Positions 8,040 through 55,414 of a stretch of 64,000 nucleotides of DNA are shown piece by piece. Position numbers and translations under genes: made by a program. Under the pieces are notes generated by a model that saw nothing but the letters and a program-made list of their open reading frames with translations, was not told where the DNA came from and ran no database searches. Each line of letters starts with the position of its first letter. Position 1 is the first letter of the stretch. The stretch lies in IMG/VR virus record IMGVR_UViG_3300028840_001395, positions 186,001 to 250,000 of that record; one strand, 5' to 3'.

Positions 8040-8218
8040 AGCTCCACGTCCTTCGGCTCGAAGTGCGAGCAGACCGGCTCACGGTCGTAGAAGCACTTGG
8101 CGTTGGCGCAGTCCCCGCAGCGGGCCTTCAGGAGTTCTTGAAGCTGGTTGGAGCATTCGCCCAGGACACGCCTCGCCTCGGCGGAATCGAGGCGTTCGAT
8201 CATCTCCTCGCGGGTCAT
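8036..8218 (-). CDS. Small Cys-rich hypothetical protein
   Basis: MTREEMIERL...CGDCANAKC. Confidence 0.6.
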   Translation of the reverse strand: MTREEMIERLDSAEARRVLGECSNQLQELLKARCGDCANAKCFYDREPVCSHFEPKDVEL

Positions 8219-8712
8219 CACGTCCCCTCCCAGCCTTCCCACTCCTTCGGGTCGAGGGTGGCCGGATTCGTGTTCACGACCTTCTCGGCGGGCCAGTACT
8301 CCGGCAGTTCCTCCCACTTCTTGACCCACTCCTTGACCTTCTCCAGGGGGACGCCGTGCTTGTTGCGGGCGGCGGCGACCTCGGGAGCGCACTGGATGTG
8401 GATGACCTCGGCCTGGTAGCCATAGGCCTTTGCCGCCTGGTGGTAGGGCGCAAGCTCGGACATCCGGACGTTGGTGTTGTCCACCACGACGAACTTGTCG
8501 TTGCGGTCGCCGTTGAAGTTGGCCTGGATGACCTCGATGAACTTGCGGCAGCACTTGCCGTGGGCCAGGTCGGGATCCCTGAACTCGTACTCACCGGCCT
8601 CGTTGATGAAGTAGTGATCGGCGGAGCACACCACAGCGTCCGGGAAGTGCTGCTTGCGGTAGTGACTCTTGCCAGCACCGCTGAACCCACGCATGACGAT
8701 GACTCGGAGCAT
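8218..8712 (-). CDS. P-loop kinase, AAA_33/polynucleotide-kinase-like (N4BP2/CNPase N-terminal type)
   Basis: Walker A GFSGAGKS, CSADHYF, VVVDNTN, AARNKHGVP. Confidence 0.8.
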   Translation of the reverse strand: MLRVIVMRGFSGAGKSHYRKQHFPDAVVCSADHYFINEAGEYEFRDPDLAHGKCCRKFIEVIQANFNGDRNDKFVVVDNTNVRMSELAPYHQAAKAYGYQAEVIHIQCAPEVAAARNKHGVPLEKVKEWVKKWEELPEYWPAEKVVNTNPATLDPKEWEGWEGT

Positions 8713-11557: not shown

Positions 11558-11586
11558 TCTTATCTTGAGTCCCGACAGAGTAGTCT
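11558..11586 (+). promoter_or_regulatory. Phage motif promoter copy 8 (right arm of divergent pair)
   Basis: TCTTAT-N17-TAGTCT then AGGTGAGGAG. Confidence 0.8.
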
Positions 11587-11607
11587 AGGTGAGGAGAGGA
11601 GCACGCG

Positions 11608-12162: not shown

Positions 12163-13302
12163 ATGGCCAAGTCCAAGATCGAGAAGCTCGCGGCCCTGAT
12201 CGCCAAGGCCAAGGACGCGTACTACAACGGGAAACCCATCATGGGTGACCCCGAGTATGACGCGCTCGAAGACGAGCTGCGGAAGCTCGACCCGAGCAAC
12301 CCCGTCCTGGCGATGGTCGGTGCAGACCCGACCGGGAGCGGCTGGCCCAAGGTCAAGCACGAGATCCCGATGGGGTCGCTCCGCAAGGCCCAGGACTCCG
12401 ACGACATGGACAAGTGGTTCTCGACGCAGAGCGTCAACACGCCGGTCTGTGTCTCCGACAAGCTCGACGGCATCAGCATCGGCCTGCGCTACGAGAAAGG
12501 CAAGCTCGTCCAGGGCTTGACGCGGGGCGACGGCGACACGGGTGAGGACATCACCAGGAACGTCATGCTGATGCAGGGCGCGGTCAAGGTGCTCCCCAAG
12601 ACGGTCAAGGGCAAGCCCCTCCCCGACGTGGTGTACGTGCGGGGCGAGGTGGTGGTCAAGAAGTCCGACTTCGCCGCCAACTTCAAGGGCGACTCCAACC
12701 CGAGGAACACCGCGAGCGGGACGGCCAAGCGCCAGAGTGACCCGAGCAAGTGCAAGCACCTGACCATCCTCGCGTACCAGTGGCTCCCGGACGGCATGGC
12801 CCCGGAGTTCAAGTGCGACGAGTTCCACGCGCTGGTCGAGGCCGGGTTCCAAACCGCCAACTTCAAGGTCTGCAAGAACGCGGCCCAGGTACAGGCCTTC
12901 TACCAGGAGTACGTGGACAAGACCCGCGACTCCCTGGACTACCTGATCGACGGGCTCGTGGTGGACATCGATGACCGGGACGTGCGCGAGGGCAAGGGCA
13001 CCACGGACGGTCGGCCCAAGGGCGCGGTGGCCTACAAGTTCCCGCACGAGAAGAAGCCGACCACGCTCCGGAACATCCGCTGGCAGGTGGGCAACTCGGG
13101 GCGCATCACCCCGGTCGCAGAGTTCGACACCGTGAACCTGGCGGGCGCGAACGTGAGCCAGGCCAGCCTCCACACGGTCGAGCGTGTCAAGAAGTTGAAA
13201 TTGTTCAAGGGATGCCGTATCCTGGTGTCGCGGCGAAATGATGTGATTCCAATGGTGGAGGCAAACCTGGATGAAAACATCAACATCAGCGACTTCGAGT
13301 AG
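12163..13302 (+). CDS. ligA: NAD-dependent DNA ligase, N-terminal half (Ia, adenylation and OB domains)
   Basis: YYNG...DPEYD, KLDG adenylation motif, LTRGDGDTGEDIT, RGEV, DGLVV, AVAYKF, WQVGNSGRITPVA, RNDVIP; stops before the Zn finger. Confidence 0.93.
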   Translation: MAKSKIEKLAALIAKAKDAYYNGKPIMGDPEYDALEDELRKLDPSNPVLAMVGADPTGSGWPKVKHEIPMGSLRKAQDSDDMDKWFSTQSVNTPVCVSDKLDGISIGLRYEKGKLVQGLTRGDGDTGEDITRNVMLMQGAVKVLPKTVKGKPLPDVVYVRGEVVVKKSDFAANFKGDSNPRNTASGTAKRQSDPSKCKHLTILAYQWLPDGMAPEFKCDEFHALVEAGFQTANFKVCKNAAQVQAFYQEYVDKTRDSLDYLIDGLVVDIDDRDVREGKGTTDGRPKGAVAYKFPHEKKPTTLRNIRWQVGNSGRITPVAEFDTVNLAGANVSQASLHTVERVKKLKLFKGCRILVSRRNDVIPMVEANLDENINISDFE

Positions 13303-14101: not shown

Positions 14102-14115
14102 AGGTGAAGGAGAAG

Positions 14116-14946
14116 ATGATGACCGTGTCAGCAGCGAGAGAGTATTTTGAAGCACCGACCCTCTGCCCCTCCTGCGGGGGCCAGCTCAAGCGGGACGGCG
14201 AGTACCTCATCTGCCCGAACACCGATGGCTGCGAGGCCCAGGCGACCGGCGCTATCAAGCGCTGGTGCAAGAAGATCGACGTGAAGCACGTCGGGGAGAG
14301 CCTCATCGTGGTGCTGGTCGAGGAGGGGCTGGTCAAGGACATCGCAGACCTGTACACGCTCGACCCCGCCGAGGTCGAGAACCTGACGATGGGCGACCGC
14401 CGGGTGGGCGGTACGGGTCGCAAGGCCGTGACCAACCTGCGGAACAAGATGGCCCTCCCGCTGCACGTCTTCGTCGGGAGTCTCGGCATCCCGCTCATCG
14501 GGCGCAGCATGGCCAAGACCATCGTGGACGGCGGTTTCGACAGCCTCTCGAAGATGCTCAAGGCCAAGATCTCCGAGGTCGCCGCCATCCCCGGCGTCGG
14601 CCAGAGCAAGGCCGACAGCTTCGTCAAGGGCTTCACCGCCAAGGCCGGGCTGGTCGCCAAGCTCATCTCGGTCGGCATCGTGGTGCAGAGCGCCACCGGG
14701 CCGCTCAAGGGCAAGGTCTTTTGCCTCACGGGCTTCCGCGACAGCGACCTGACCGAGGCCATCGAGCGGGCGGGTGGCACGGTCAAGTCCAGCGTGAGCA
14801 AGAAGCTGACGCACCTGGTGCTCAAGGATCCGTCCTCGACTTCGGGCAAGGCGAAGAAGGCCCGCGACTACAACAAGCAGGGCGTGGCCGACATCGAACT
14901 GATAGACCCGGACGAGGCGTGGGATCTCGCGGGAGGTCGTCCGTGA
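14116..14946 (+). CDS. ligA: NAD-dependent DNA ligase, C-terminal half (Zn finger, HhH repeats, BRCT)
   Basis: PTLCPSCG...CPNTDGC, IDVKHVGES, SLGIPLIG, IPGVG, LKGKVFCLTG...GGTVKSSVSKKLTHLV. Confidence 0.92.
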   Translation: MMTVSAAREYFEAPTLCPSCGGQLKRDGEYLICPNTDGCEAQATGAIKRWCKKIDVKHVGESLIVVLVEEGLVKDIADLYTLDPAEVENLTMGDRRVGGTGRKAVTNLRNKMALPLHVFVGSLGIPLIGRSMAKTIVDGGFDSLSKMLKAKISEVAAIPGVGQSKADSFVKGFTAKAGLVAKLISVGIVVQSATGPLKGKVFCLTGFRDSDLTEAIERAGGTVKSSVSKKLTHLVLKDPSSTSGKAKKARDYNKQGVADIELIDPDEAWDLAGGRP

Positions 14947-15433: not shown

Positions 15434-15744
15434 TGGGCCTCTACCTGCACCCGCCGGGCTTCCTCCCCGAATGGCTCAAGGAGAACGCCATCGAGATCAC
15501 CCGACAGGATGTTCTCGACGCCGACCTGACGGACGAAGATACGCTCCCCGTCTGTCTCGTCCCCAATCCCTACGCCGAGGGTGTGTGGGCCGCAGGGGTC
15601 ATCTACGACGACATCGAGCGCGCGGAGTTCACACGGGAGGATGACCCGCGACCGAAGACCTGGTGGTTGCTCGAAGTGGAGAAGATCAAGGAGTTCGCGG
15701 GGGAAGTCCACCGGCTTACCAGGCGGGGTCCCCGAGTAGTCTAG
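15433..15744 (+). CDS. Hypothetical protein
   Basis: MGLYLHPPG...; TGATG coupling. Confidence 0.65.
   Translation: MGLYLHPPGFLPEWLKENAIEITRQDVLDADLTDEDTLPVCLVPNPYAEGVWAAGVIYDDIERAEFTREDDPRPKTWWLLEVEKIKEFAGEVHRLTRRGPRVV
15714..15742 (+). promoter_or_regulatory. Phage motif promoter copy 11
   Basis: GCTTAC-N17-TAGTCT then GAGGAGG. Confidence 0.8.
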
Positions 15745-16762: not shown

Positions 16763-16791
16763 GCTTATTTCTCCCCGCGACAGAGTAGTCT
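16763..16791 (+). promoter_or_regulatory. Phage motif promoter copy 12 (PARP gene)
   Basis: GCTTAT-N17-TAGTCT. Confidence 0.8.
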
Positions 16792-16812
16792 AGGGGAAGG
16801 GAGAACAGGACG

Positions 16813-18489
16813 ATGGCAGAGAAGCTCAAGAGACGCGAGTTCCCGTCCGGCTACAACCCGGACGACTTCGAGTACAAGGGTCGCCCGGCCAACGACCAGG
16901 GCGACTTCGGCGGCGACGTGGGCATCGCGGACATGGCCTGCGTCGATCAGTTCGGAGAGAAGAACGCCAGCAAGTTCTACCACGGCGGCGTCGTCCAGGC
17001 GAACGACGGCACCTGGTTCCTCTACACGGAGTGGGGCCGCTGCAAGCCCGGCAACTCCTGGTCGGGTTCGTCCTGGACGGGCAACGCCCAGGACTTCCAG
17101 TTCGTCCGCTGCGGCTCCGAGGATGAGACCCGCGCCGAGTTCGCCAAGAAGATGGCGAGCAAGAACACCAAGCGCCTGACGCAGATCGACGTGGGCGGCA
17201 AGAAGGTGTGGGCGGGCAAGAAGGGCAAGGACGGCTACATCGTCCAGCAGCTTGCCACCCGCGAGAAGGGCCTCCCCGACGCCCTCCGCATCAAGGACAA
17301 CTCGGGCGTCGGCTCCGCCGCCAACGGTGGCAACGGCAAGACGGCGAAGCCGAAGGCCAAGGGCAAGAAGGCCAAGGCCGCGAAGCCGACCCGCAAGTTC
17401 GACCAGCAGGTCGTGTCCCTCGCTTCGTCGCTGGTCGGCGGCACGCAGACCTACACCCGGTCGCTCTCGGCGGCGTCCGGCGTCACGCCGACGATGAACG
17501 CCATCGAGGAGGTCAGGAACGACCTGATCCCCGCCGCGATGGAGCGCATCAAGACGGTCGGTGACGACGTGAGCGCCCAGGTGCGGGACAACAAGCTCGT
17601 CGCCATCTCCAAGATGGTCGCCGCGATGGTTCCGCGCCCCATCCCGCGCAAGGGCCAGAGCGAGGAGGACGCGATCCTCTCCGGCGGCAACATCCTGGTC
17701 TTGCAGCAGGACTTGGACGCCTTCGAGGCCGCGCTCCTGAACGAGGACTTCGAGCAGGAGGCCCCCGACACCACGGTCAACCCGGACACGCTGCTCAACG
17801 CCCGGCTGTCCTACCTCGACCCCAAGGGTGACGGCAAGTGGGTCGCCCAGGCCTTCGCCAAGATGACCGCCAACCGGCACGGCTACATCCGGGGCCGGAT
17901 GAACGTGCGGCACATCTTCGCCGTCGAGCGCCCCGACCGCGACGCCCGGTTCATGAAGTGCGTCAAGCAGATCGCGGCCAAGCGCAAGGGCCGGTTCAGC
18001 CTGACGGCGAACCTCCAGCCCCGCTCGCGGAACGACCTGAACGGCATCGGGGACGACTATGGCCTGGCGAACGTGGTGCTGGCCATCCACGGCACCCGGC
18101 CCGTCAACATCGCCCCCATCATGGGGACGAACTTCCGACTGCCGCGCAGTCTGCCCGGCGCGCAGATCACCGGGGCCAACTTCGGTCACGGGGTGTACTT
18201 CGCCACGGACTGGAAGAAGTCCTACGGCTACACGGGGCGCGGGTACTGGGGGCACTCGGGCGGCGACATCCGCAACCGAGGGTGCTTCATGTTCCTCTGC
18301 GACATGGCGATGGGCGACCCCTACCGCGCCCCCTCGACCGGCTCATGGAGCCAGCCCCCGCAGGGCAAGGACTCCGTGTTCGGCGTCGGCGGCGACCGAG
18401 GCCACCGGCTGGAGAACGACGAACACGTCATCTTCAACCCGGACTACCAGCGCATCCGCTACCTGGTCGAGTTCGACTGGCTGACCTAG
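16813..18489 (+). CDS. PARP-like ADP-ribosyltransferase: WGR domain + helical regulatory domain + PARP catalytic domain
   Basis: SKFY...LYTEWGR (WGR); IHGT, NFGHGVYFATDWKKSYGY, MFLCDMAMG, DSVFG, NDEHVIFNPDYQRIRYLVEF (H-Y-E triad). Confidence 0.88.
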   Translation: MAEKLKRREFPSGYNPDDFEYKGRPANDQGDFGGDVGIADMACVDQFGEKNASKFYHGGVVQANDGTWFLYTEWGRCKPGNSWSGSSWTGNAQDFQFVRCGSEDETRAEFAKKMASKNTKRLTQIDVGGKKVWAGKKGKDGYIVQQLATREKGLPDALRIKDNSGVGSAANGGNGKTAKPKAKGKKAKAAKPTRKFDQQVVSLASSLVGGTQTYTRSLSAASGVTPTMNAIEEVRNDLIPAAMERIKTVGDDVSAQVRDNKLVAISKMVAAMVPRPIPRKGQSEEDAILSGGNILVLQQDLDAFEAALLNEDFEQEAPDTTVNPDTLLNARLSYLDPKGDGKWVAQAFAKMTANRHGYIRGRMNVRHIFAVERPDRDARFMKCVKQIAAKRKGRFSLTANLQPRSRNDLNGIGDDYGLANVVLAIHGTRPVNIAPIMGTNFRLPRSLPGAQITGANFGHGVYFATDWKKSYGYTGRGYWGHSGGDIRNRGCFMFLCDMAMGDPYRAPSTGSWSQPPQGKDSVFGVGGDRGHRLENDEHVIFNPDYQRIRYLVEFDWLT

Positions 18490-18515
18490 CCCGACAGGGC
18501 TAGGGGGAGGAAGAG

Positions 18516-18692
18516 ATGACCCTGCTCGACGGCTTCTGGTGGCTCTCGACTCCGCGTGCGACGTTCGGTGCCGAGGTCAAGGGCGGCATCGTGACCGAGT
18601 GCCCGATGGACGCCTACCAGGGACAGCCCTTCACCAAGGTACTCACCGAGTTGGTCGCTGGCCCCGGCGAGTTCCGCTGCGCGAGGATCTGA
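18516..18692 (+). CDS. Small hypothetical protein (58 aa)
   Basis: GGAGG RBS; translated by hand. Confidence 0.55.
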   Translation: MTLLDGFWWLSTPRATFGAEVKGGIVTECPMDAYQGQPFTKVLTELVAGPGEFRCARI

Positions 18693-19116: not shown

Positions 19117-19408
19117 CCCTGGCTGGCACAACATCCCCAGGCCGCAGAAGATGATCGCGGTCGGTCTGGTGCTCATCGGGCTGTCCCTCGTCTGGTTCGG
19201 CCACCTCACCCCCCTTGGAGACAAGGGACAGAGCCTCGGTACCGACCTGATGCTGTTCGCGGGCATCTACGGGCTAGTGCATGAGCTGGCTGCCACGAAG
19301 AAGCGGCTCCGCAACATCCAACAGGTCATCAAGACCGAGAACGTGAACGTCGCCTGCCAGACGGTCAACATGATAGAGGGGGGCTTGTCGGAGCCTCCAA
19401 AGGAGTAG
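19097..19408 (+). CDS. Two-helix membrane protein
   Basis: Two hydrophobic segments. Confidence 0.6.
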   Translation: MQDFTDSPGWHNIPRPQKMIAVGLVLIGLSLVWFGHLTPLGDKGQSLGTDLMLFAGIYGLVHELAATKKRLRNIQQVIKTENVNVACQTVNMIEGGLSEPPKE

Positions 19409-19411
19409 TCT
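19383..19411 (+). promoter_or_regulatory. Phage motif promoter copy 13 (variant -35)
   Basis: GCTTGT-N17-TAGTCT; the -10 TAG is the upstream stop codon. Confidence 0.7.
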
Positions 19412-19453
19412 AGGAGAACAGGGTGCCAACCCACAGAGGGAGAGGAGATACCT

Positions 19454-20259: not shown

Positions 20260-21039
20260 ATGAAGATCGAAGACCCCCGCAACGCCCAGGCCATCGCCCA
20301 GTCCCCCGACTGGCGCACCGCCGTCACCGACCTGCTGACCCTGTGGGCCAACGAGAACCGGCCCTTCTCTTCGGGCGAGGTCGCCTCCGCCCTGCGGACG
20401 CACCGGCCCGACCTGCGGTTCAGCGTCCTGTCGGTGGGCGAGCACCTCCGCGACATGTTCTACTCGCAGACGATGCCGCCCTACGCCGGGGGCCAGCCGT
20501 TCCAGGTGCCCCGGCTCACCGAGGGCCTGTACCCGACCCGCACGACCGCCGGAACCGAGGTGTTCGTCTACGCCCCGCAGCCCGACGAGGGCGACTCGCA
20601 CGACTTCGAGGTCTACATCCCCGAGCCGGGCGAGACCATCGCGGACGCCCCGGCCCAGGCCATCCCGCAGACGCAGCAGGCGCAGCAGACCGGCGGGCCG
20701 ACCCCCGTGACCATCTTCGGGGCCAAGGTCGCCAACGCGGACATCAAGGCCAAGGTCCACGACGACAAGCGCCTCTGCGTCCCGCGCTCCGCCTTCGAGC
20801 TGTCCGTCCACCTGGGGGCGCAGCCCATGCGGGGCGGCGAGCCCGTGTACGTCACGATGGAGCCGGACAAGGTGACCGTCAGCCTGTCCGACCCCGGCAA
20901 CGGGGCCAAGCCCTACGACCTGTCGCAGACCAGGGGGCGCGTGCTGTTCCCCTCCCCCGACCCGGCCAAGCCCTTCTCGCCGGGCGCGGTGTTCCAGGTC
21001 AAGGTCGAGAAGGGCGTCCTGACCATCGACCTGCCCTAG
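20260..21039 (+). CDS. Putative DNA-binding protein with C-terminal AbrB/MraZ-like repeats
   Basis: KVHDDKRLCVP...PVYVTMEPDKVTV and TRGRVLFP...FQVKVEKGVLTI swapped-hairpin-like repeats. Confidence 0.55.
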   Translation: MKIEDPRNAQAIAQSPDWRTAVTDLLTLWANENRPFSSGEVASALRTHRPDLRFSVLSVGEHLRDMFYSQTMPPYAGGQPFQVPRLTEGLYPTRTTAGTEVFVYAPQPDEGDSHDFEVYIPEPGETIADAPAQAIPQTQQAQQTGGPTPVTIFGAKVANADIKAKVHDDKRLCVPRSAFELSVHLGAQPMRGGEPVYVTMEPDKVTVSLSDPGNGAKPYDLSQTRGRVLFPSPDPAKPFSPGAVFQVKVEKGVLTIDLP

Positions 21040-23275: not shown

Positions 23276-24221
23276 GAAGCGCATCTTCGGGGCCGTCAAC
23301 GAGCACTGCCGGAAGCGGCTGAAGTCCTTCGTGGATGCCTTCGACCCCGAACGGCTCGACTACACCGACTACGGGGAGTCCGAGTCCATCGTCTTGACCC
23401 TGAAGAACGGCAAGCGCGTCAAGCTCAACGCCAACTCCAACACCGTGGACGGGGCCTGGATCACCGTGGACATCCTTGACCCCGTTACGCCGAAGTCGTA
23501 ACGGCGGAGACGTAATGGCCAAGGACAAGGTGCTGGACGTGAAGAAGGGCGGCTTCTCCATCGGTGACGCGGTGATGTTCGAGGACAACCGCTGCAAGGT
23601 CGTCGGCTTCGGCACCCAGACAGAATCCGCCATCGTCCGGGTCACAGTGCCCGGCAACAAGACCGGACGCCGCCTCGCGGTAGCGGTGGTGCCCATCGAC
23701 CAACTGAAGAAGGTCAAGAAGTGAGCAGCGACGCCTACAACAAGTACCTCCAACTGGAAGCCAAGCGGCACGTCATCCTCAAGACCCACAAGGGCACCCA
23801 GGACGAACTCGACGCCCTCGAAGACCCCATCCTCGAAGCAATGGACCCGCTCTGGTGGGAGATGACCGAGGAGGAACGGGCCAGCATCAACGAGGCCACG
23901 AGGAAACGAGCCACCACCCCTCGCACGGATGTCCCGAAGAAGTACACCTGTGCCTGGTGCCGGAAGAAGTTCGTCTCCGAGATCCGACCCCCTCTCCGAC
24001 TCCCGGATGGGGCCAAGCATGGTCGGGTGGGGGTGTCCAACAAGGTCGAGAAGCTGGGCGAGCCCATTGTCATCCAAGGCCATGCCGTGAGCCCCCCTGG
24101 AGGCGCTCTGTTCGAGGGTTCCGAGTTCGCCTGCTCGGTAGAGTGCTACGAGAACCTGACGGGCCAGGAGCCACCGGATGGCGCGACCCATAGCCAAGGT
24201 GCAAGTTCAGACCAGTCTTGA
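23268..24221 (+). other. Three small hypothetical CDSs (23268-23501, 23515-23724 SH3/KOW-like, 23721-24221 with CAWC...CSVEC Zn finger)
   Basis: Contiguous ORFs with overlaps. Confidence 0.6.
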
Positions 24222-25143
24222 CCGCTGGGCCTGGAAACGCCTTCAACGCATCCTGAAACACCGCGAGACCACGAAGAGATACGGCGAGGAATGGCCCAAT
24301 CAATCACTGATTCTGCGCGAGATCGTGCAGGCTTACATGGAGGAACACCCCGAAATGGATCCACACAGCGAAGCCCGGAGTCGTCTGATCGTCGCCCTCG
24401 ACATGCCCCACCGGGACGCCCTGGAGGCTGCCCGGAGGCTCAAAGGTCGTGTCGGAGCCTTCAAGCTCAACTCCGCCTTCGTGGGTGGCGGACCGGAGAT
24501 CCTCGCGGATTTCTTCCAAAACGCCGGACCAGTGTTTCTGGACATGAAGTTCCACGACATCCCCAACACCGTGGCCAACCACGTCACGGCGGTCACGGAG
24601 ATGGGCAGGCACTACCTGGCCGGAAAGCCTGGAGACCCCTATGTCTCGATGATGACCATCCACACGGCGGCAGGCGAAGCGGCGATGAAGGCGGCAATGG
24701 AAGCTGCCCGGAAGGCCGCGACTCACGCGAACCGCCCCCGGCCCAAGATTCTGGGTATCACCGTCCTGACCTCGCTCTCCGCCGAGGACTGCGAGGCGGT
24801 CGGGATGTCCGTCCACGGTGAGACTGATGCCGCTGCCGTCACCGATGTCGTCCTGAAGCGAGCCAAGCTGGCCCGTGACTGTGGCCTGGACGGACTGGTC
24901 TGCTCCGGCAAGGAGGTCGAGGCCGTCCGCGAGGTGGTCGGGGAAGAGATGAAGCTCGTGGTGCCGGGTATCCGTCCGGCTGGGGGGTCGGAAGATGACC
25001 AGGCGAGGGTAGTAACCCCTGAGAAGGCCATCAAGGCCGGGGCAGACTACCTCGTCGTGGGGCGCTCCATCTACGGGGCCAATGACCCCGGCCAAGCCGC
25101 CGATGAGATCGTGGCCCAGATCGCGGAGGCTCTGACCGGATGA
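24178..25143 (+). CDS. pyrF: Orotidine-5'-phosphate decarboxylase with ~60-aa N-terminal ribbon-helix-helix-like extension
   Basis: LIVALD, FKLN, FLDMKFHDIPNTV, ITVLTS, VVPGIRP, DDQARVVTP, GADYLVVGR; alternative internal ATG near 24355. Confidence 0.92.
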   Translation: MARPIAKVQVQTSLDRWAWKRLQRILKHRETTKRYGEEWPNQSLILREIVQAYMEEHPEMDPHSEARSRLIVALDMPHRDALEAARRLKGRVGAFKLNSAFVGGGPEILADFFQNAGPVFLDMKFHDIPNTVANHVTAVTEMGRHYLAGKPGDPYVSMMTIHTAAGEAAMKAAMEAARKAATHANRPRPKILGITVLTSLSAEDCEAVGMSVHGETDAAAVTDVVLKRAKLARDCGLDGLVCSGKEVEAVREVVGEEMKLVVPGIRPAGGSEDDQARVVTPEKAIKAGADYLVVGRSIYGANDPGQAADEIVAQIAEALTG

Positions 25144-25700
25144 GGATCTACATCGACTGTGACGACACCCTGTTCCCGTTCACCAAGGGCATCTTGGAGG
25201 CCTGCAACCGGGAGCATGGGACGAATCTGACAGTGGATGACGTGACCCAGTGGGCGGTCAACCCCGTGCTGCCTCCCGGAGTCCAGTGGTGGGAGTTCAC
25301 GGACAGAGAGGGCTTCTACAGGGACTTGGAGCCGTTGCCCGGTGCCCGAAGCCTGGTGAACGCCGTTCGTGCGTCAGGGAGGCCCTGGGGCTTCCTGACG
25401 AGCCTTCCTGTCAAGCACACCAGCAGCAATCTCATTGAGGAGCGCCGGATCTGCCTCGACAATAGCTTCGCAGTGGACGGACGGGATATCCCGAGCCGCA
25501 GGCTCATCGTGGCCAAGCGCAAGGATCTGGTCGTCCATGAGGGCGACGTGCTGATCGATGACTACATCGAGAACATCAAGGCGGTCGAGGCGGTAGGTGC
25601 AAAGGGCATCCTCGTGAAACAGCCCTCGAATCGTAATACCGCTAGACCGAGATGGACTCTCCCGGAAGTGACAGAGTGGGTGAAACAACTCCCGAGGTGA
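25140..25700 (+). CDS. 5'(3')-deoxyribonucleotidase (HAD, NT5C type)
   Basis: YIDCDDTL, FYRDLEPLPGA, GDVLIDDYIENI. Confidence 0.85.
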   Translation: MRIYIDCDDTLFPFTKGILEACNREHGTNLTVDDVTQWAVNPVLPPGVQWWEFTDREGFYRDLEPLPGARSLVNAVRASGRPWGFLTSLPVKHTSSNLIEERRICLDNSFAVDGRDIPSRRLIVAKRKDLVVHEGDVLIDDYIENIKAVEAVGAKGILVKQPSNRNTARPRWTLPEVTEWVKQLPR

Positions 25701-25704
25701 CCGA

Positions 25705-26361
25705 ATGGGTGGAGAAGCTGCCGAGTCTCCCCTGAAGCCCCTCGCAGACCTCGAAGAGATGACCCAGAATCGGGTCAACGAGGCGCTGCTGGACCTGCTA
25801 CCGGGGAGCCTGATCTCCGAGATAGTGGAGCAGAGAGTCCGGGACTTCATCGGACAGTCCCTCGATGCGATGGTCGAGAAGGCCGTCACCGAGCGTTTCG
25901 AGGAAGCGATGTCCGAGTGGCTGCGGGACGCCGGTTTCACCGACCGCATCGGTGAGATCGGCCAGCAGTTCATCGACAACAACATCCCCAAGGATCGCAT
26001 CGAGCGGGAAACCGAGAAGCGGGTCGCCACCCTCATGGGCGGCAAGGTCGATAAGATGATCTACGCTGCCGTGGAGAAGCGGTTCCAAGAGTGCATTGAC
26101 AACTGGGTGACCAAGAACCTCACCGAGCTTGAGTTCGGAGACAAGTACGAGGATATCGTCGCGGAAGCTGCCCATGAGTATGCCCGTGGGATGGGCCAGA
26201 ATCTCTTGACCAACGTGATGAAGGCATTGCAGATGGTCGGCTCGGGGGTCATCGCCACGGCCAATGCGGCTATGCACGATGACTTAGCCGTTTGCCCGAC
26301 GTGCAAGATCCTGGTCAAGAGCAACGAGCAGTGCCCGATGTGCAAGCAGTATGTCTACTGA
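25705..26361 (+). CDS. Helical hypothetical protein with C-terminal Zn ribbon
   Basis: CPTC...CPMC at the C-terminus. Confidence 0.7.
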   Translation: MGGEAAESPLKPLADLEEMTQNRVNEALLDLLPGSLISEIVEQRVRDFIGQSLDAMVEKAVTERFEEAMSEWLRDAGFTDRIGEIGQQFIDNNIPKDRIERETEKRVATLMGGKVDKMIYAAVEKRFQECIDNWVTKNLTELEFGDKYEDIVAEAAHEYARGMGQNLLTNVMKALQMVGSGVIATANAAMHDDLAVCPTCKILVKSNEQCPMCKQYVY

Positions 26362-26767
26362 CGACACCAGCAACGACGCCGAGATCCAGGGCCTCACGAT
26401 GACCCTGGTGAAGCAGGCATTCCGACACACCTTCCCCGGTGCCCGGTTCAAGCTCACCGACCGCCTGGGTGGCAAGGTGCTCACGTCCGTCATCTGGCAG
26501 TTCGAGGTCGAGCTGTCCGTGACCGAGAGGCCGATCTCCTACGCGGATACGGACGGCGAAGCCACGGTGACGATCACCTTCCGGCCTGCCGCCAAGAGGC
26601 CGACCATCGTGGTTCACCAGGAGAGCACAACGAGTCCGACGCGGGTATGGACTCTGGTGAAGGACACGCGGAAGTACCTGGAGGGCATCGCGGCAGCAAT
26701 CACGATGGCCTGCGAGGAACAGTACTACGACGACACGAATGATGTCCGTGACCTTTTCGGAGAGTGA
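26351..26767 (+). CDS. Hypothetical protein
   Basis: ORF overlapping both neighbours. Confidence 0.65.
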   Translation: MSTDDTSNDAEIQGLTMTLVKQAFRHTFPGARFKLTDRLGGKVLTSVIWQFEVELSVTERPISYADTDGEATVTITFRPAAKRPTIVVHQESTTSPTRVWTLVKDTRKYLEGIAAAITMACEEQYYDDTNDVRDLFGE

Positions 26768-26778
26768 GGGAGAAAGCG

Positions 26779-27609
26779 ATGCCCGATGTCCAGCAGATCC
26801 AGGTCGTATGCCGGTCAATCGACCAGGCCCACTTCAACTTCATCAGGGAGCTGTTCCAGCGGGGGCGCACCTACGTCAACCTGCGGGGCAGCTACGAGGG
26901 TCACCAGCGGCTGGAGTTCGGGTTCATCAACTTGCACCTGACCCATCCGGGCGAGGACACGGTGCCGATTCTGCCCCAGGGTGTCCCGGCGATGAGCACC
27001 CTGGAGGGCAACGAGAAGTACTTCCTCGACAAGCTCATGAATCCCGACCCCGAGCCGAACGAGCAGTACACCTATGGGCGCTTCATCGCCCCGCAGCTCC
27101 CGAAGATCGTCAAGATGCTGCGGGACACGCCGGACACCAACCAGGCCGTCATCTGCATCGGCAACGAGCACAGCGTCGATCAGGAGCATCCGCCCTGTCT
27201 CCGGCTGATCGACTTCCGTGTTCAGGGCGACCGGCTCCACATGTTCGTCTACTTCCGCTCCTGGGATCTCTGGGGTGGCCTCCCCGAGAACCTCGGTGGC
27301 CTGCGACACCTTCAGGAGTACGTCGCCACCGAGATCGACCGGGATGCGGGCGAGCTTCTCGCGGCCAGCAAGGGCCTGCACCTGTACGACATGGCGTGGC
27401 CCGTCGCCTTGATGCGCCTCGCGGACAACATGCCCGACAACTCGGTCATCACCCGGAAGCAGGCCGAACTGGGTGAGGGCTGGATGTCCGTCTGCGCTGC
27501 CTGTGGGGAGTCCATCGCGGAGGGTGAGGGCCACCGGGCGACGCGGCTCAACCCGGAGACGGGGCAGGACGAGTACGTGATGTACTGCAACGCCCACAAG
27601 GAGCCCTAG
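26779..27609 (+). CDS. thyA: Thymidylate synthase family protein (compact type) with C-terminal Zn-finger-like tail
   Basis: YTYG, HPPCLRLIDF (catalytic Cys), FRSWDLWGGLPENL (Asn = dUMP-type specificity), GLHLYD. Confidence 0.8.
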   Translation: MPDVQQIQVVCRSIDQAHFNFIRELFQRGRTYVNLRGSYEGHQRLEFGFINLHLTHPGEDTVPILPQGVPAMSTLEGNEKYFLDKLMNPDPEPNEQYTYGRFIAPQLPKIVKMLRDTPDTNQAVICIGNEHSVDQEHPPCLRLIDFRVQGDRLHMFVYFRSWDLWGGLPENLGGLRHLQEYVATEIDRDAGELLAASKGLHLYDMAWPVALMRLADNMPDNSVITRKQAELGEGWMSVCAACGESIAEGEGHRATRLNPETGQDEYVMYCNAHKEP

Positions 27610-29345: not shown

Positions 29346-29854
29346 GCCCACCCACGTCCATAGAGCGCACTCATGATCTTTTTCACGCACTGGGACACCG
29401 TATCTTGCGGTGTCAGGCGGAGATCGTGTCCTTTGGGCTTCTCGAAGGGGTCGTCAACCCCGGTGAAGTGAGGGAGATCGCCCCGTCTGGCAGCCTCCCA
29501 CATCCCCTTCACATCACGTTCCTCGCAGACCTCGGTAGGGGCGTCCATCCAGACCAGAATCACCCGGTCGAGCACCCTCTGAATATCTTCGCGGTCCTTC
29601 TCATAGGGTGTGATGTTGGCGGCGACAACACAGATTCCCTGACGGTTGACGACCCCAGCCACCTCACGGACACGCCGGAGGTTCTCCCTGCGGTCAGGCA
29701 AACTGAAGCCCAGGTCAGAACACAACCCTGTCCGCACAGCGTCCCCGTCGAGGGACAAGCACGGGGAGGGAAGAGAGGGAACCAGAACGCGGGCAATCGT
29801 GGTTTTGCCTGAGCATGGAAGGCCCATCAACCAGACGGTGAATCCGTACTTCAC
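29342..29854 (-). CDS. cysC: Adenylyl-sulfate (APS) kinase
   Basis: [52 protein letters not shown]. Confidence 0.93.
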
Positions 29855-30888
29855 TCGGACTCTTTCCCCGCCAACTTCAGGTCGTGGGCCACCATGAGCC
29901 GCACGAGTTCCTCGAACTTGACGGAGGGTGTCCATCCGAGGCTGTCCGCTGCCTTGGAAGCGTCACCCAGTAGCTCCACGACATCCGTGGGCCGGAAGTA
30001 TCTCGGGTCAACCTGAACGCGGACTCGCCCACGTTCGTCAACCCCGTGACGATGAACCCCCTCACCCAAGAACTCCAGGGGCATCCCAGCACACGCGAAC
30101 GCCTCCCGGCAGAAGTCCTCGACCGAGTGGTCCTCACCCGTGGCCAGCACGTAGTCCTCGGGTGCGTCCTGCTGGAGCATCCGCCACATGCCCTCCACGA
30201 ACTCGGGAGCGTATCCCCAGTCCCGGCGGGCAGCCAGGTTACCCAGGTAGAGGCAATCCTGTAGGCCGTGCTTGATGCGACCCACGGCCCGAGTGATCTT
30301 CCGGGTGACGAAGGTCTCGCCTCGACGCTCCGACTCATGGTTGAACAGGATGCCGTTGCAGGCGTAGAGGCCGTAGGCTTCCCGGTAGTTCACCGTCACC
30401 CAGTAAGCGTACAGCTTGGCCGCAGCGTAGGGGCTGCAAGGACGGAAAGGTGTGCTCTCGCTCTGGGGTGACTCCTGCACCTTGCCATACAGCTCCGAGG
30501 TCGAAGCCTGGTAGAAGCGGGTCTTGATTCTGGCGTCCTTGATCGCGTCGAGCAGGCGAATGGTTCCCAGTCCCGTGACTTCAGCGGTGTACTCGGGCAC
30601 CTCGAAGCTGACCTTGACGTGACTCTGCGCCGCCAGGTTGTAAATCTCGTCCGGTTCCAGGCGCTCAATCAGGCGGGAGATGTTCGACCCATCCGTCAGG
30701 TCGCCGTAGTGCAGGAACAGCGTGCGGTCGTTGACGTGGGGGTCTTGATAGAGATGGTCGATGCGAGCCGTGTTGAAGGAGGACGAGCGACGGATGATGC
30801 CGTGAACCTCGTAGCCCTTGGCCAGCAGCAGTTCAGCCAGGTACGATCCGTCCTGGCCGGTGATTCCTGTGATGAGCGCCTTCCTCAT
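29851..30888 (-). CDS. gmd: GDP-mannose 4,6-dehydratase
   Basis: [61 protein letters not shown]. Confidence 0.97.
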
Positions 30889-31793
30889 GCGTGCCTCTTG
30901 AACCAGTCGTAGGTCTTGCGAATGCCGTCCTCCAGCGAGGTCTGTGCCTGCCAGCCCAGATCCCGTAGTCGGCTCACGTCGAGCAGCTTCCGGGGCGTCC
31001 CGTCCGGCATGTCGGTGTCCCAGAGGATGTCACCCTCGTATCCCACCACTTCCTTCAGCAGGGAGGCCAGTTCCGCAATCGTGAGATCTTCACCCACCCC
31101 GACGTTGACGAAGTTGTCCCGTCCGTCCGCATCGAAGTGCTCCATCAGGAACACCAGAGCGTCGGCCAGGTCATCCACGTAGAGGAACTCCCGGCGGGGT
31201 GCCCCCGTCCCCCACAGAGTCACCGAGGGCAATCCTGCGACTTTGGCATCGTGGAAGCGCCGCAGTAGGGCGGGCAGGACGTGGCTCCCGTGGGGGTCGA
31301 AGTTGTCGCCGGGGCCGTAGAGGTTCGTGGGCATCGCGGCGATGAAGTTGGTGCCGTGCTGCCGGTTGTAGCTCTGGCACATCAGGATGCCCGCGATCTT
31401 GGCGATGGCGTAGGCGTCGTTGGTCGGCTCCAGTGGCCCGGTCAGGAGGTGATCTTCTTGCATCGGTTGCGGCGCGAGCTTGGGATAGATGCAGGATGAC
31501 CCGAGGAACAGCAGCTTGCGGACACCGTGGCGATAAGCTGCATCGATCACGTTGGTCTGGATCTGGAGGTTGACCCGAAGGAAGTCCGCCGGGTAGGTGT
31601 CGTTGGCCAGAATCCCGCCCACCTTGGCTGCTGCGAGGAATACACCTTCGGGCTGCTCCTCGGAGAAGAACTCATCCACCGCCTGCGGGTCGGTGAGGTC
31701 GAGCTGGTCACGGTCGCGGACGAGGGGCGGTGTTGGGAGCCTCCGACACAAGGCGGACCCGACGAGGCCCTTATGACCGGCTACATACCACAT
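30885..31793 (-). CDS. fcl: GDP-L-fucose synthase
   Basis: [60 protein letters not shown]. Confidence 0.96.
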
Positions 31794-32482
31794 CACAGGT
31801 CTCGTGGAGCCTGCGGGGCGACCGGTTTCTCCCGGCCCTGTGCCCTCTCCACATCCTTTGCACTGCTCAGCATACACTGGTCACAGTGGAGCGGGAGATC
31901 GCCAATCTTCTCTTTCCAGTCGGGGTTGTCCTCCAGCTTGAGGCCCTTCCCGAGCGGAACACAGCAGGGATAAACGAACCCGTCCAGGCAAATGGTCGTG
32001 GTGTACTTGTTATTGCAGTCTCGTGGGTCTTGCCCAGGAGCCGACCAATGCACCGTCTTGGCCTCGGCTAGCTGGACACGCCCCTCGCAGTAGTGCCGGA
32101 GTTCCTGGATGGTGTGAGTGTTGCTCTTGCATCCTGGGTGGGTCTCGGAGGTGAGGACAGGGACTCGCACGGCATCGAAGTAGTCGAGGATGTCCAAGTG
32201 ATCAAGGATCAGATCCCCGTTGGTGGCCAAGAAGATCTTGTCGTAGGAATAGCCCTCACTGACGGCCTTGACCACCTCCTTCAGGCGAGGGTGAAGCAAA
32301 GGCTCCCCTCCCGTGATGCAGAGGTTGGGGATGTGGCCGATCAGGGGGGCCAGCTTCATGAGGAAATCCACATCCCAGTGCTGCGCCTTCCTGTGAGGGA
32401 TCCGAAAGCTACACGAGGGGCATTTCCTGTTACACGCGGTCGTGATCATCAGAGCCAGCAAGTGGAGGGGTGCTGTAGCCAC
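31793..32482 (-). CDS. Radical SAM protein with short SPASM/twitch-like C-terminal region
   Basis: CNRKCPSC (CxxxCxxC), [15 protein letters not shown]-terminal Cys cluster. Confidence 0.85.
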
Positions 32483-34546: not shown

Positions 34547-37500
34547 TTACCTCTTGATTCCGAGAAGATTCAGAGAGACGGTGTCGTAGGATGACCAGTC
34601 CCTCACCGCCTTGATCTCCGGTACTTCGTTACTCTTCCATTCCTTGATATCCTTGAACCCTGCTGCGATCAGCAGCTTGGTCAGGGACTCCTTCACGAAG
34701 GTCTGCTTGTGGCGGTCGGGTTCCTCCGCCGCCTTGCGGAAGTCTCCGAACAGGGGAGCGTTGGGGTCTTTTCCGAACTTGTGCGACTCGACGCAGTTGG
34801 CCACGATGAGTCGCAGATCAGGAACCGCGACCCGAAGGATACCTCCAGGACGTAGCGCCTGGTGCCAGTTCCGTAGGATGTCGAGGGTTTCCTCGGCGTA
34901 GAAGTGCTCAAGGACATGGCAGGCGTAGATCTCGGAATAGGCCGCGCTCGGGAGAGCTTCGTGGGCGTCGAGCACCTGATCGACTGCCGGGCCGGGCCTC
35001 AAGTCCGTGTTGATGTAGCCCTTGATGTGCTTGTCGCCACAGGCGATGTGGAGCTTCAGTTCTTTCTGGGGCGGGGTGGGTTCCACGATGTCTACCTCGG
35101 GAATCGAGACAGTTTCATGGTTTCCGGTTGGGAGCGCCAAGCCCCTCTGTCGGCGTTCCTCCCGGACGATGGCGAGAAGTTGTTCCATTGCAACGTCCCA
35201 CGTCCAGTGGTCACGGGCCAGTTCGTATCCGGCCTGCTGAATGACAGCCCTGTCCGCATCCCGTTCGGGTCTCAACCAGTCCCGGAGTAGCTCGACAAGC
35301 TCCTCGTTGTCCTTCCAGATGACGCAGTTGACCCCATCTTGCAGACCGTAGCCTTCCATGTCATCGAAGTACTGGACGGCACAGAAGCCCTTGGTGATGA
35401 GGGAGTCGGGAAGTCGGTCGGAAGTGTAGCGGCGGAGCTTCTGGAAGAGGGACTGCACGACCACGACGCGGGCGACGGAATGAAGCTCTGCACGCCGAGC
35501 CCGTGCGATAAACGGGTGTGATAGGATGGGCTGGCGGAGCTTGTTCCAGGAATGTCCGTAGCAGACATACATCCCCGGAAGGGCCTTCTCGATGTCCAGC
35601 GCCATCTGAACGCGAGGTGCCACCCCCGGCCCCTTGTGGAACCCAGTGTGAGGAGACCCTGTGAAGCAGGCCTTCCCAGCCGCTTTCCAGTCCTTCGGAT
35701 TCCCCTGACGAGGCCCGTTGACGGTGGTGTCCGTCCCGATAATATGGTGCCCAGTCTTGGCCCGGACACCCATCTCTCTGAGCTTCTCGGCGTAGGTACA
35801 CTCCGACGAGAGGAACAGGTCAAGTTCCTTGCACTGATCTGCCTGCCACGCCTCAACCGGCTCGTCAATGTCCGTCCGGACATCCCCCGTCCACGACACG
35901 ATGAGGCAGTTCGGAGGGGCGAGCTTCCGCATCTGACGGATGATGCCCGAGTTGAAAGCCCTGTTCCCCTGCACCTGCATCCAGATCAGAGTTGGCTGGT
36001 GCGTCCTGATCAGCTCATAGACCTCTTCATACATCCGATTGAGACCGACCTTCTGCCTTCGTTCGTTCCAACGGATCGTCTGATATGGCCCCATCCTTGC
36101 CAAAGCCAGACAGTGACCATGTTGGGCTTCATGCGACCCGGCAAGAGAGACGTGCAGGACTCTCTCGGGAGGCCCGGCTTCAATCGGTGACCGCCGGTGA
36201 GGCATCCCCCGCTTAGGGTTGTACACGTTGGGCCAACCCATCGGGTCTCGGGTGATAGGCCTCGCGTACTTCTTGTTGTATTTCTTATGCCACGCATCCC
36301 GGTGCTTATTGAGGCGCGTTGAGTTGGCTTCCCTGTTGGGATCGTCCAGAGTCTCATTCACCAGGTCGATGAGCGTCACATCAGGCTTACGCTCCATCTT
36401 CCAACCCAGCCGATGTCCTCGCAGCCCCCAGGCCGAGTCTCCCCCGTAGGTGTGATGTGTCCGGGTGTTTTCGTCGCCCCAGAAGGCCCCGAAGCCTTCC
36501 GCGATGATGTCCTCGCACATCTCCCGGCGAGCAACGACCTGGTTGGGGTGAGGAAGACCAGGGGCTTGAGGGAAGTCCATCTTCATGTAGGTCTTACCCC
36601 GGTCACGGCTCATGTGAAAAGCCACGGCCCCGAGAGTTGGGTCGGAGTCCAGGTGCCGTATCGCGTTCGCTATCGACTTCCCTTCGATGATGATGTCGTC
36701 GTTGATCTGACAGATGAACCTGCCCTTGGACGCTTCATACGCCCGGTTGAAAGCCGGAATCGCCCCCTCCATCCCTCCCAGGATGGGCCGGATATCAGAC
36801 TGCTCCTTCATCCACGTCATGGATGTGTCGGACTCATCGCCGTAGGCGATGACGATCTCGTAGGTGTAGTCGGAATCCTTGAGGCTCTCGCGGACAGATG
36901 CCACGCATTCCTTGAGCATCTCCGGTCGGTTGACTGTTCCCAGAATCACCGAGCAGTCGATAGGAGCCGCCGTGACCATGCGAGAGATATCCCGCTGCAG
37001 ATCAGGATGGAGGGGGGGAGGGGCAGGCTCGGGGATAACCTCGGGAGGCTTCTGTGGATGCCTGTTCTTCCACTTTCGCACGGAGTCCCGCATCGGCTTC
37101 CGACCGATGCGGGAAGGAGCTTCCTCGACCGGAACCGGAGGCTGATCCCCCCGGAGAGACTTCAGGAGCTTCCTCATGTCCTCCGGAATGTCCTCTGCAT
37201 CATCGAGGCTACCCTGACCGATGATCTCGAAGGAGCCCTTGCGTGAACGACCTTCTCGCTCCAACACCGCCCGGTTCCAGATGTTGTCCGCGTGCTGCAA
37301 GCAGACGATGAGGTCGATCTCCTTGGTGATATCCTTGAACACCGGGCGGGTGTTCATCCCCTTGCGGAAAGCTGCGGCCATCGGGCCGTCTTTGCCCCGT
37401 GCCCGCTCCGGCCAACCCCCGACCTTGCGGAGATGCTCTCCTGCGAAGGAGATGCTCGTCCCGATGAGTCCCTGCTCGGCCCGGCCTGTCCACCGCATCA

Positions 37501-52240: not shown

Positions 52241-52242
52241 AG

Positions 52243-55385: not shown

Positions 55386-55414
55386 ATAGTAGGGGCCTTC
55401 TGGCCCCGTGTCAA
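55386..55414 (-). promoter_or_regulatory. Host sigma70-type promoter
   Basis: TTGACA-N17-TACTAT, near-consensus. Confidence 0.75.

Follow-up and report, generated by a model that had tools for sequence, protein, structure and literature searches.

A PARP-family ADP-ribosyltransferase with a recurrent downstream partner gene in a huge marine phage

The stretch of DNA analysed here (the window, 64,000 nucleotides) is part of IMGVR_UViG_3300028840_001395, a viral contig of 435,804 bp in IMG/VR which it matches with 100% identity, and it carries at positions 16813–18489 of the plus strand a gene for a PARP-like ADP-ribosyltransferase (ART). A first-pass annotation made from the letters alone had taken this gene to be phage-encoded, and the contig bears that origin out: the carrier is a huge marine phage of ~436 kb. 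Position 6813 of the window falls at 192813 of the contig. The open reading frame (ORF) runs from an ATG start to a TAG stop and encodes 558 amino acids (aa), with its position and the motifs quoted for it (HGT, GVYFA and NDEHVIF, at aa 426–428, 460–464 and 535–541) having been given exactly; the G+C content of its third codon positions (GC3) is 0.96, in a window of 62–67% G+C. Both ends of the protein (N-terminal MAEKLKRREFP..., C-terminal ...EFDWLT) coincide with those of its homologues, so that the gene boundaries are sound. The gene and the ligase region upstream of it show 0 differences in contigs of three public DNA runs from 2018 and 2021 (metagenomes of seawater and of sediment); these runs possibly include the window's own source sample and therefore confirm the assembly rather than provide independent support. 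The GenBank phage collection holds no DNA nearly identical to the window.

The gene lies in a plus-strand DNA and nucleotide-metabolism block at 11.6–29 kb that also comprises a NAD-dependent DNA ligase, a partner gene described below, OMP decarboxylase, an NT5C-type nucleotidase and a thymidylate-synthase-like protein. Three features went beyond what the first-pass annotation had recorded: the conserved partner gene, an ADP-ribosylglycohydrolase in a related clade and the splitting of the ligase.

The protein begins with an N-terminal extension and WGR domain (aa 1–162; 16813–17298, plus strand), which contains the invariant W74-G75-R76 and ends in an invariant LATRxxGLPD (aa 147–156). A disordered, basic Ala/Lys/Pro-rich linker of net charge +10 (aa 163–196; 17299–17400, plus strand; predicted local distance difference test (pLDDT) <50 at aa 165–186) leads from there to a helical regulatory domain resembling the helical domain (HD) of PARP1 (aa 197–360; 17401–17892, plus strand), with an invariant DLDxF (aa 300–304), the invariant H356 and helices in the structural model. 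The ART domain follows (aa 361–558 and the TAG stop; 17893–18489, plus strand), with H426-G427, Y462, K469-S470, Y473 and E537 and a match to PF00644. Although its sequence differs among the 35 relatives compared, the linker has a positive net charge in every one of them (median +5), which suggests non-specific DNA affinity or a region for automodification.

Profile searches place the protein firmly among the PARPs, as the first-pass annotation had proposed for the catalytic domain. In Pfam, PF00644 (PARP catalytic) is matched over aa 344–526 at 59.1 bits (cut-off 26.7; E 5e-16) and is the only significant ART family match; the only significant PHROG match is phrog_23333, labelled 'polymerase'. 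A phmmer search of the PDB returned the catalytic domains of PARP1, PARP2 and PARP4 at E ~2e-6, and with a profile built from 35 family members the E-value improves to 4e-11, the profile aligning collinearly with three pieces of the PARP1 WGR-CAT fragment, which hold the WGR motif, the HD and the ART domain, respectively. In the helical piece it is profile positions 227–371 that align with PARP1 (domain i-E-value 0.34).

Structure prediction, which had been named as a check on the annotation, gives a PARP fold. The AF2 model of the protein (pLDDT 81.8, predicted TM score (pTM) 0.77) consists of a beta-rich domain at aa 1–160, the disordered linker at 165–186, a helical domain at 198–350 and an ART domain at 364–555. 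In VIA-align, model residues 8–558 align with PARP1 536–1009 bound to a DNA break (4dqy_C) with Z 21.9 over 397 residues, and residues 190–558 with PARP1 661–1009 with Z ~22, the helices at aa 198–350 superposing on PARP1 661–785; the ART domain alone matches those of PARP4 and PARP1 with Z 22–24 and a root-mean-square deviation of 2.4–2.8 Å over 207–220 residues. The best Foldseek matches in the PDB, at E 1e-18 to 1e-20, are PARP1 WGR-CAT bound to a DNA double-strand break and PARP2 bound to a bridged break, and the Swiss-Prot AlphaFold models of full-length PARP1, PARP2 and PARP3 align over query residues ~17–557. The gene thus encodes an intact, PARP-family (H-Y-E) ADP-ribosyltransferase with the three-domain layout of the PARP1/2/3 clade, and the enzyme is probably active.

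Six relatives of the protein (P0026, P0040, P0044, P0054, P0065 and P0088) carry in the ART domain a Cys-rich insert of ~35 aa (SCxKC...CxCGG) that looks like a zinc ribbon; it is located between PPxx and DSVFG, after window aa ~516, and the window protein does not have it.

Residues were mapped onto PARP1 by profile alignment, with a constant offset of 516 from construct to PARP1 that was verified at W589-G590-R591 and H862. PARP1 W589-G590-R591 corresponds to W74-G75-R76, H826 to H356, H862-G863 to H426-G427, Y896 to Y462, K903-S904 to K469-S470, Y907 to Y473 and E988 to E537. In the 35-sequence alignment W74, G75, R76, H356, H426, Y462, K469, Y473 and E537 are invariant, G427 is nearly so and S470 is also given as invariant; the catalytic triad H426, Y462 and E537 is therefore constant throughout the family.

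The first-pass annotation had read this triad as the signature of a polymerising enzyme, and although the triad is present, that reading is oversimplified. PARP3 and PARP4 carry H-Y-E yet only mono-ADP-ribosylate according to Frigon and Pascal (PMC10711553), so that the triad is necessary but not sufficient for polymer formation. The acceptor-site determinants described in the same review are K903, H826, M890 and the L985-Y986 region. Two determinants of elongation, K469 (K903 in PARP1) and H356 (H826), are kept and invariant in the family, whereas the position equivalent to M890 (456) is N or A and the context preceding the catalytic glutamate is x-N-D-E (N535 and D536 invariant) rather than the L-Y-N-E of PARP1, neither of these being kept. 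Polymer and single-unit transfer can therefore not be told apart from the sequence.

A second gene accompanies the PARP-like gene with unusual constancy. All-vs-all clustering of the ORFs of 39 viral loci yielded, besides the PARP gene and antisense shadows, only one family that recurs across divergent loci, and in the window this partner is a 259-aa protein encoded at 20260–21039 (plus strand), with a predicted winged helix at aa ~14–106, a linker and a putatively MraZ/AbrB-like beta domain at aa ~150–259. The viral partners form two sub-families, of ~270 aa (the window type) and ~230 aa (a distant clade), which are homologous over their whole length (hhalign 97%, E 1e-10, with reciprocal HMM matches). 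The partner is found downstream of the PARP gene and on the same strand in 23 of the 39 viral loci, counting both sub-families, and in all 13 bacterial loci it is the next gene downstream; there, as in L011, L034 and L037, the two genes abut or overlap. The association holds in reverse as well: four of four partner homologues on long contigs, chosen without reference to PARP, have a PF00644 gene 0–5 kb upstream. With 211 matches the partner family is about as large as the PARP family, and at least 12 of the top 120 partner matches share their longest contig with a PARP match. The linkage extends over PARP identities of 30–100% and over viral and cellular contexts that have no other flanking genes in common, and since the flanks otherwise differ, shared ancestry of whole regions does not explain it.

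The AF2 model of the partner has a pLDDT of 90.5. Its N-terminal winged helix gives weak fold matches (Z ~5) to Fur, Zur and PadR-type domains, and its C-terminal beta domain gives weak matches to MraZ (1n0e, Z 5.4) and to an AbrB-family AFDB cluster (E 1e-3, TM 0.48). PF04014 (MazE_antitoxin) matches a distant member of the family at 26.2 bits against a cut-off of 24.7, the window copy being unmatched; Foldseek found no match for the partner in the PDB, and a protein-atlas look-up gave sub-threshold leads only (0.74; HARE-HTH and DUF families). As these fold matches are weak but mutually consistent, the partner is predicted to be a protein with two DNA-binding-type domains. NCBIfam contains no match for either the PARP-like protein or the partner.

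Two further families were considered as members of the same system. A family of ~277 aa without a Pfam match, designated A4, lies just downstream of the PARP gene in a third viral sub-clade which has no partner (L020, L022, L026–L028, L035, L036 and L039); it was rejected as a divergent form of the partner (hhalign 4%). The window itself has a homologue of this family at 46231–47052 (plus strand, 24% identity). The third conserved gene of the Nannocystaceae loci (393 aa) is regarded as a mere neighbour, having a low-complexity acidic N-terminus and no Pfam match and being absent from the phage loci.

Upstream of the PARP-like gene lies a bipartite promoter-like motif (16764–16794, plus strand), composed of CTTATTT (16764–16770), a 16-nt spacer and GAGTAGTCTAGG with TAGTCT (16786–16791); its 3′ end is 19 nt short of the ATG, with a Shine-Dalgarno-like GGGAAGGGAG in between. 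The first-pass annotation had given the gene its own motif promoter, and the element is indeed a real repeat: the 17-mer CGACAGAGTAGTCTAGG (16778–16794) has 11 copies in the window at no more than three mismatches against 0.11 expected, and its 12-nt core has 16 copies at no more than one mismatch. All copies are situated upstream of a gene and in that gene's orientation, and their general form is CTTAT(T/C)T, 16 nt, (A/G)GAGTAGTCTAGG. The 16 sites fall between 5812 and 56267 (e.g., 11573–11589, 12137, 14092, 16778–16794, 19398–19414, 44063 and 51291) and precede, among others, the PARP gene, both halves of the ligase and a two-gene unit with the partner as its last gene. The copies are putative promoters. 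A sigma-70 region-4 protein is encoded at 55411–55929 (minus strand) and could be the factor that reads the motif.

The family to which the PARP-like protein belongs is large, with at least 360 metagenomic members, a good number of them on contigs of 200–620 kb. A word-indexed search returned 362 relatives, more than 120 of them full-length at 53–89% identity, all metagenomic, bearing no name beyond the label 'hypothetical protein' and with several located on contigs of 375–444 kb. An exhaustive search gave, at E <1e-30, 64 cluster representatives, some of them full-length at 33–40% identity; beyond the family it found mostly proteins of ~400–470 aa which match only the last ~140 residues. Conservation over the full length, at 53–89% and more distantly at 30–40%, is the pattern that selection on all three domains would produce. 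In IMG/VR 35 loci were identified, 17 of them on contigs longer than 200 kb and up to 619 kb. In a collection of species-representative genomes 13 full-length copies were found, all in Myxococcota and at 49–56% identity, the carriers including the cultured Plesiocystis pacifica SIR-1, three strains of Enhygromyxa salina and Nannocystaceae bacterium ST9 (on a 6.98-Mb contig). The pair of PARP and partner in Nannocystaceae is chromosomal and syntenic across genera (loci L040–L052, e.g., L043, L044, L047, L048 and L051).

A comparison with bacterial PARPs by phylogeny, proposed in the first-pass annotation, was carried out as a quick maximum-likelihood tree rooted on the short relatives that match only at the C-terminus. 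The myxobacterial sequences form a single group nested inside the diversity of the viral contigs, and the window protein belongs to a well-supported viral clade of seven members. This topology is a suggestion, and only that, that phages were the source of the bacterial copies, while the synteny within Nannocystaceae together with their single clade fits a stable cellular function. Given the marine source, the G+C content of 62% and the kinship with the chromosomal copies, Nannocystaceae-like myxobacteria are plausible hosts of the carrier phages.

In a microbial-mat metagenome, short contigs at ~570–720x word depth match window positions 18287–18600, 15595–15726 and 12900–13050, with 5 differences in 203 nt at the 3′ end of the PARP-like gene; a close relative of the phage or of this gene seems to be very abundant there.

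The BRCT-bearing NAD-dependent ligase that had been placed about 1.9 kb from the PARP-like gene does end at 14946, 1,867 bp upstream, but it is divided between two ORFs. The N-terminal half (adenylation and OB domains; 12163–13302, plus strand; PF01653 E 2e-49, PF03120 E 1e-20) corresponds to residues 9–385 of the ligase of L004, an intact protein of 652 aa encoded next to the PARP gene there, and the C-terminal half (Zn finger, HhH and BRCT; 14104–14946, plus strand; matches to BRCT, HHH_5 and HHH_2) to its residues 390–651. The split therefore falls between the OB domain and the Zn finger, the C-terminal half has its own promoter-like core at 14092, and the arrangement is the same in the contigs from the three DNA runs. 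Joining of the two halves, which are in the same frame, by read-through or by an intein was rejected, as the frame between them is interrupted by numerous stops, with all three stop codons represented. The two halves flank an ORF of 828 bp, in another frame, which encodes a TnsA/endonuclease-I-like nuclease (PF08722, E 8e-13); it looks like the insertion of a free-standing mobile endonuclease.

LigA is encoded within 10 kb of the PARP gene in seven loci (the window, L004, L006, L017, L019, L070 and L073), the order in L073 being PARP, LigA, a small ORF and the partner. From gene neighbourhoods, the ligase would appear to be a genomic associate, its link being weaker evidence than that of the partner. 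One distant clade has, in seven loci, a gene for an ADP-ribosylglycohydrolase (PF03747, E 6e-42) 3–8 kb downstream of the PARP gene, which would constitute a pairing of writer and eraser.

The window has other features as well. A nucleotide-metabolism and repair set is encoded at 24178–27609 (plus strand), 40153–40731 (minus strand) and 8218–8712 (minus strand), its members being OMP decarboxylase, the NT5C-type 5′-nucleotidase, the thymidylate-synthase-like protein, a protein of the uracil-DNA glycosylase superfamily and an AAA_33 P-loop kinase. The protein encoded at 49705–50352 (plus strand), which has a phosphoribosyltransferase domain (E 5e-11), is a candidate member of an NAD+/ADP-ribose network. 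Two genes resembling those of nucleotide-sugar epimerases (phrog_540) stand in tandem at 29851–31877 (minus strand), and next comes an ORF of 1,328 aa within the region 34547–39546 (minus strand) with a weak PHROG methyltransferase match; the glycosyltransferase and methyltransferase Pfam matches of the window batch scan were not individually assigned to this ORF. An adjoining 340-aa protein matches endolysin families over its N-terminal 60–70 aa, and the region as a whole has the appearance of a block for glycan modification or a cell-wall-related role. At 55943–56033 (minus strand) lies a tRNA of 91 nt, labelled Pyl by ARAGORN, whose anticodon is CUA and whose variable arm is long; it looks like an amber-suppressor candidate, yet TAG ends 16 of the 52 confident ORFs of the window, those of the PARP and partner genes among them. 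The combination recalls the stage-specific stop-codon recoding proposed for large phages. Finally, a second WGR protein of 349 aa without an ART domain is encoded at 59096–60148 (minus strand); it matches PF05406 above threshold (27.6 bits, aa 138–218) and its core reads KFY...RWGA. Standalone WGR proteins of jumbo phages have been read as transcription factors in the account of PMC7824862.

We consider the protein to be a DNA-discontinuity-activated ADP-ribosyltransferase that works with a DNA-binding partner on replicating or damaged phage DNA, and assign to this a probability of roughly 0.5. Fold, order of domains, catalytic and NAD-site residues, conservation within the family and linkage to the partner are observed. 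The WGR domain, aided by the basic linker, would bind a DNA discontinuity (a nick, gap or end), binding would relieve the block that the helical domain imposes on the NAD+ site, and the ART domain would then move ADP-ribose from NAD+ onto itself and onto DNA-bound targets. These steps of DNA activation and relief of autoinhibition are modelled on the PARP1/2/3 paradigm and on the PARP of Herpetosiphon: the bacterial WGR-PARPs of Herpetosiphon and Clostridioides difficile are described as active in vitro, the former being DNA-dependent (PMC8120803, PMC4245714). The winged-helix/AbrB-like partner would most likely be a dedicated target or a DNA-targeting or regulatory subunit; genomic context is what points to such a role as target or cofactor, and to repair or replication as its setting. 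In the phage the pair may mark or regulate nicked or broken replicating DNA, alongside the NAD-dependent ligase and the nucleotide-metabolism genes, and in the related clade the adjacent ADP-ribosylglycohydrolase would make the mark reversible. The first-pass annotation had offered phage DNA repair, host takeover and NAD+ depletion side by side without choosing among them; the stable copies of Nannocystaceae, which have the same partner, favour a DNA-linked regulatory or repair role and disfavour pure takeover.

Several observations weigh against this account of a DNA-activated enzyme working with its partner. The WGR domain and the helical regulatory domain named in the first-pass annotation are supported, respectively, by the invariant W74-G75-R76 with profile and model alignments to PARP1 and by helices that superpose on the PARP1 HD, but PF05406 (WGR) stays below threshold (13.6 against 22 bits, E 0.073) and PF02877 (PARP_reg) has no match in the protein in the Pfam search. 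PARP4, as far as its published description goes, illustrates that the WGR-HD-ART architecture does not by itself entail activation by DNA or full autoinhibition. The partner is missing within 10 kb in 16 of the 39 viral loci, including a whole sub-clade, and in the window it stands 1.8 kb from the PARP gene behind its own promoter-like motif. Prediction of a complex between the two proteins scored 0.00, which is no answer: it lends no support to direct binding and is counted neither way. The association with the ligase occurs only in the window's clade, where it may be synteny by descent. The ADP-ribosylglycohydrolase is absent from the window, as searched by tblastn with the protein of the related clade, and a pattern scan of IMG/VR for this enzyme did not return the window's contig, a result that depends on the pattern and so does not prove absence.

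A more tentative proposal, which we regard as possible, is that the PARP and the winged-helix/AbrB-like protein make up an undescribed two-component ADP-ribosylation switch in huge phages and Nannocystaceae. If so, a writer that senses DNA lesions would be coupled to a dedicated DNA-bound substrate or cofactor, as a prokaryotic and viral counterpart of PARP-chromatin signalling, reversible where an ADP-ribosylglycohydrolase adjoins, and it would let huge phages control how their own, very large genomes are replicated, repaired or transcribed.

The same two genes might instead be a conflict module, in which the AbrB/MazE-like partner, as antitoxin or sensor, restrains or triggers a toxic effector that consumes NAD+ or ADP-ribosylates its targets; bacteria would use it for abortive infection, and huge phages for superinfection exclusion or for competition with other phages. 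That phages and bacterial chromosomes share a two-gene set, and that the bacterial clade falls inside the viral diversity, would suit such a module, as would the MazE/AbrB-type domain, and ARTs are described as common in toxin-antitoxin and defence systems (PMC9503650). We nevertheless hold this doubtful, mainly because the bacterial copies are stable and syntenic, apparently vertical across Nannocystaceae genera rather than patchy, which is also the main argument against host takeover. The partner is moreover large (~260 aa), encoded downstream and predicted to have two DNA-binding-type domains, unlike small upstream antitoxins; PADLOC gives matches at noise level only for the PARP and partner (E 0.002–0.005) and none for related proteins, no model of a described defence component being matched beyond noise; and the complex prediction is unsupportive, though it is not evidence against the module.

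Host takeover, i.e., ADP-ribosylation of host RNA polymerase, translation factors or nucleoid proteins early in infection in the manner of T4 Alt, ModA and ModB, is the published default reading for phage PARTs in the account of PMC7824862, and the position of the gene inside a non-structural block with one common promoter-like motif would agree with it. It is unlikely here, given that the same pair is stable in bacterial chromosomes, where takeover makes no sense, that the family conserves a WGR-HD regulatory apparatus which constitutive takeover ARTs do not have, and that the gene lacks the fusion or linkage to head-packaging genes that is described for injected ARTs.

We consider it just as unlikely that the acceptors are phosphorylated DNA or RNA termini, with the enzyme capping or marking ends in concert with LigA, RtcB and RNA ligase. 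PARP1, PARP2 and PARP3 can ADP-ribosylate DNA break termini in vitro, and LigA recurs near the gene; RtcB and RNA ligase, encoded near it in L004, L017 and L072 and in L004, respectively, occur in few loci only, and sequence does not separate nucleic-acid from protein acceptors. The window also encodes a protein of the T4 gp30.3 family (52234–52713, plus strand; PF08010, E 2.6e-57, with a weak NADAR match at E 4e-4) and one with a cREC_REC cyclic-phosphate-processing receiver domain (62331–62771, minus strand; E 3e-21), both families being predicted processors of ADP-ribose derivatives and thus candidates for an NAD+/ADP-ribose network, but 34 kb separate the gp30.3/NADAR-like gene from the PARP-like gene, and large phages commonly have genes of this sort. 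That the protein is a decayed, non-catalytic homologue, e.g., a DNA- or NAD-binding scaffold, is highly improbable, for despite an identity to solved PARPs of only 15–23% and two loops next to the active site modelled at low confidence (aa 445–454 and 477–482), the NAD+-site residues and the catalytic glutamate are invariant across the family and the ORF is intact and identical in the contigs of the three DNA runs.

PARP signalling is central to the DNA-damage biology of eukaryotes, while the PARPs of bacteria and phages are little studied: in the literature searched the assayed prokaryotic PARPs are two bacterial enzymes, and no assayed phage enzyme was found there. The family described here is abundant, full-length and strongly conserved in huge phages, and it comes with a partner and, in some clades, an eraser, so that writer, partner, eraser and DNA together form a testable minimal system for PARP-type signalling outside eukaryotes. 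The chromosomal copies in culturable marine myxobacteria (Enhygromyxa and Plesiocystis) provide a genetic handle which the uncultured huge phages do not offer, as well as a hint at host range.

Among known enzymes, human PARP1, PARP2 and PARP3 have the same domain order of WGR, helical and ART domains, and the model superposes on them; the H-Y-E triad, G863, K903, S904, Y907, H826 and W589-G590-R591 of PARP1 are all conserved in the phage protein. It differs from these proteins in its identity of 15–23%, in lacking zinc fingers, BRCT and the basic N-terminal tail, in place of which it has the basic disordered linker between WGR and HD, and, with regard to PARP1, in the change of M890 to N or A and of the Y-N-E context to N-D-E. 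A further difference is the dedicated downstream partner of the phage and bacterial gene, which is unrelated to HPF1 or histones; the family, moreover, is found in viruses and bacteria rather than in eukaryotes. Human PARP4 is the best single-domain structural match (ART, Z 24.2) and has H-Y-E, WGR and HD in common with the phage protein; it also has Asn at the position of PARP1 M890, where the phage family has N or A, and the window protein is, like PARP4, acidic three positions before the catalytic glutamate, a position that is variable across the family. PARP4, described as a mono-transferase that nucleic acids do not activate, lacks equivalents of K903 and H826, whereas the phage family keeps both. 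T4 Alt, ModA and ModB are likewise phage-encoded, NAD+-using ADP-ribosyltransferases, but they are of the R-S-E type, without WGR or HD, and act as injected or early takeover enzymes; the present protein has H-Y-E and PF00644 as its only significant ART match, so that the first-pass annotation was right to call the two types unrelated.

The PARPs of Herpetosiphon aurantiacus and C. difficile CD160 are closer in kind, being prokaryotic WGR-(helical)-ART proteins with H-Y-E. For bacterial PARPs it has been reported that Pfam often misses a helical domain which models show (PMC5966428) and that they are thought to have spread by horizontal transfer (PMC4245714); the Plesiocystis pacifica protein is listed by Perina et al. 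2014. The present family keeps W-G-R where many bacterial PARPs are described as having Y-G-R, and bacterial PARPs have been described in association with erasers of the PARG or ARH3-like kind instead of a winged-helix/AbrB partner. Catalogued PARTs of jumbo phages (Xanthomonas phage XacN1, Klebsiella phage vB_KpM_FBKp34 and the 'PARP1' with LigA of gut NAD-jumbo phages) are similarly PARP-family ARTs of large phages. The proteins of the cultured phages Klebsiella FBKp34, Xanthomonas XacN1, Stenotrophomonas CM1 and RAS14 match the C-terminal 25–47% only, at 26–39% identity, and the sole full-length protein match in the GenBank phage collection comes from an unannotated 595-kb uncultured phage (37% identity).

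PARP homologues of bacteria and double-stranded DNA viruses, that of Plesiocystis included, were catalogued in publications of 2005–2014, PARTs of jumbo phages were noted by Iyer et al. in 2021 and 2022 (PMC7824862, PMC9503650), and a 2024 paper proposed that 'PARP1' and a NAD-dependent ligase of jumbo phages direct phage DNA repair (PMC11662467). As phage PARPs and the idea of PARP-LigA repair are thus already published, the enzyme described here is a divergent new member of a known group; what is possibly new is the two-gene module. Term look-ups in open-access full text did not find the conserved partner, the glycohydrolase that adjoins in one clade or the placement of the myxobacterial copies inside the diversity of huge phages.

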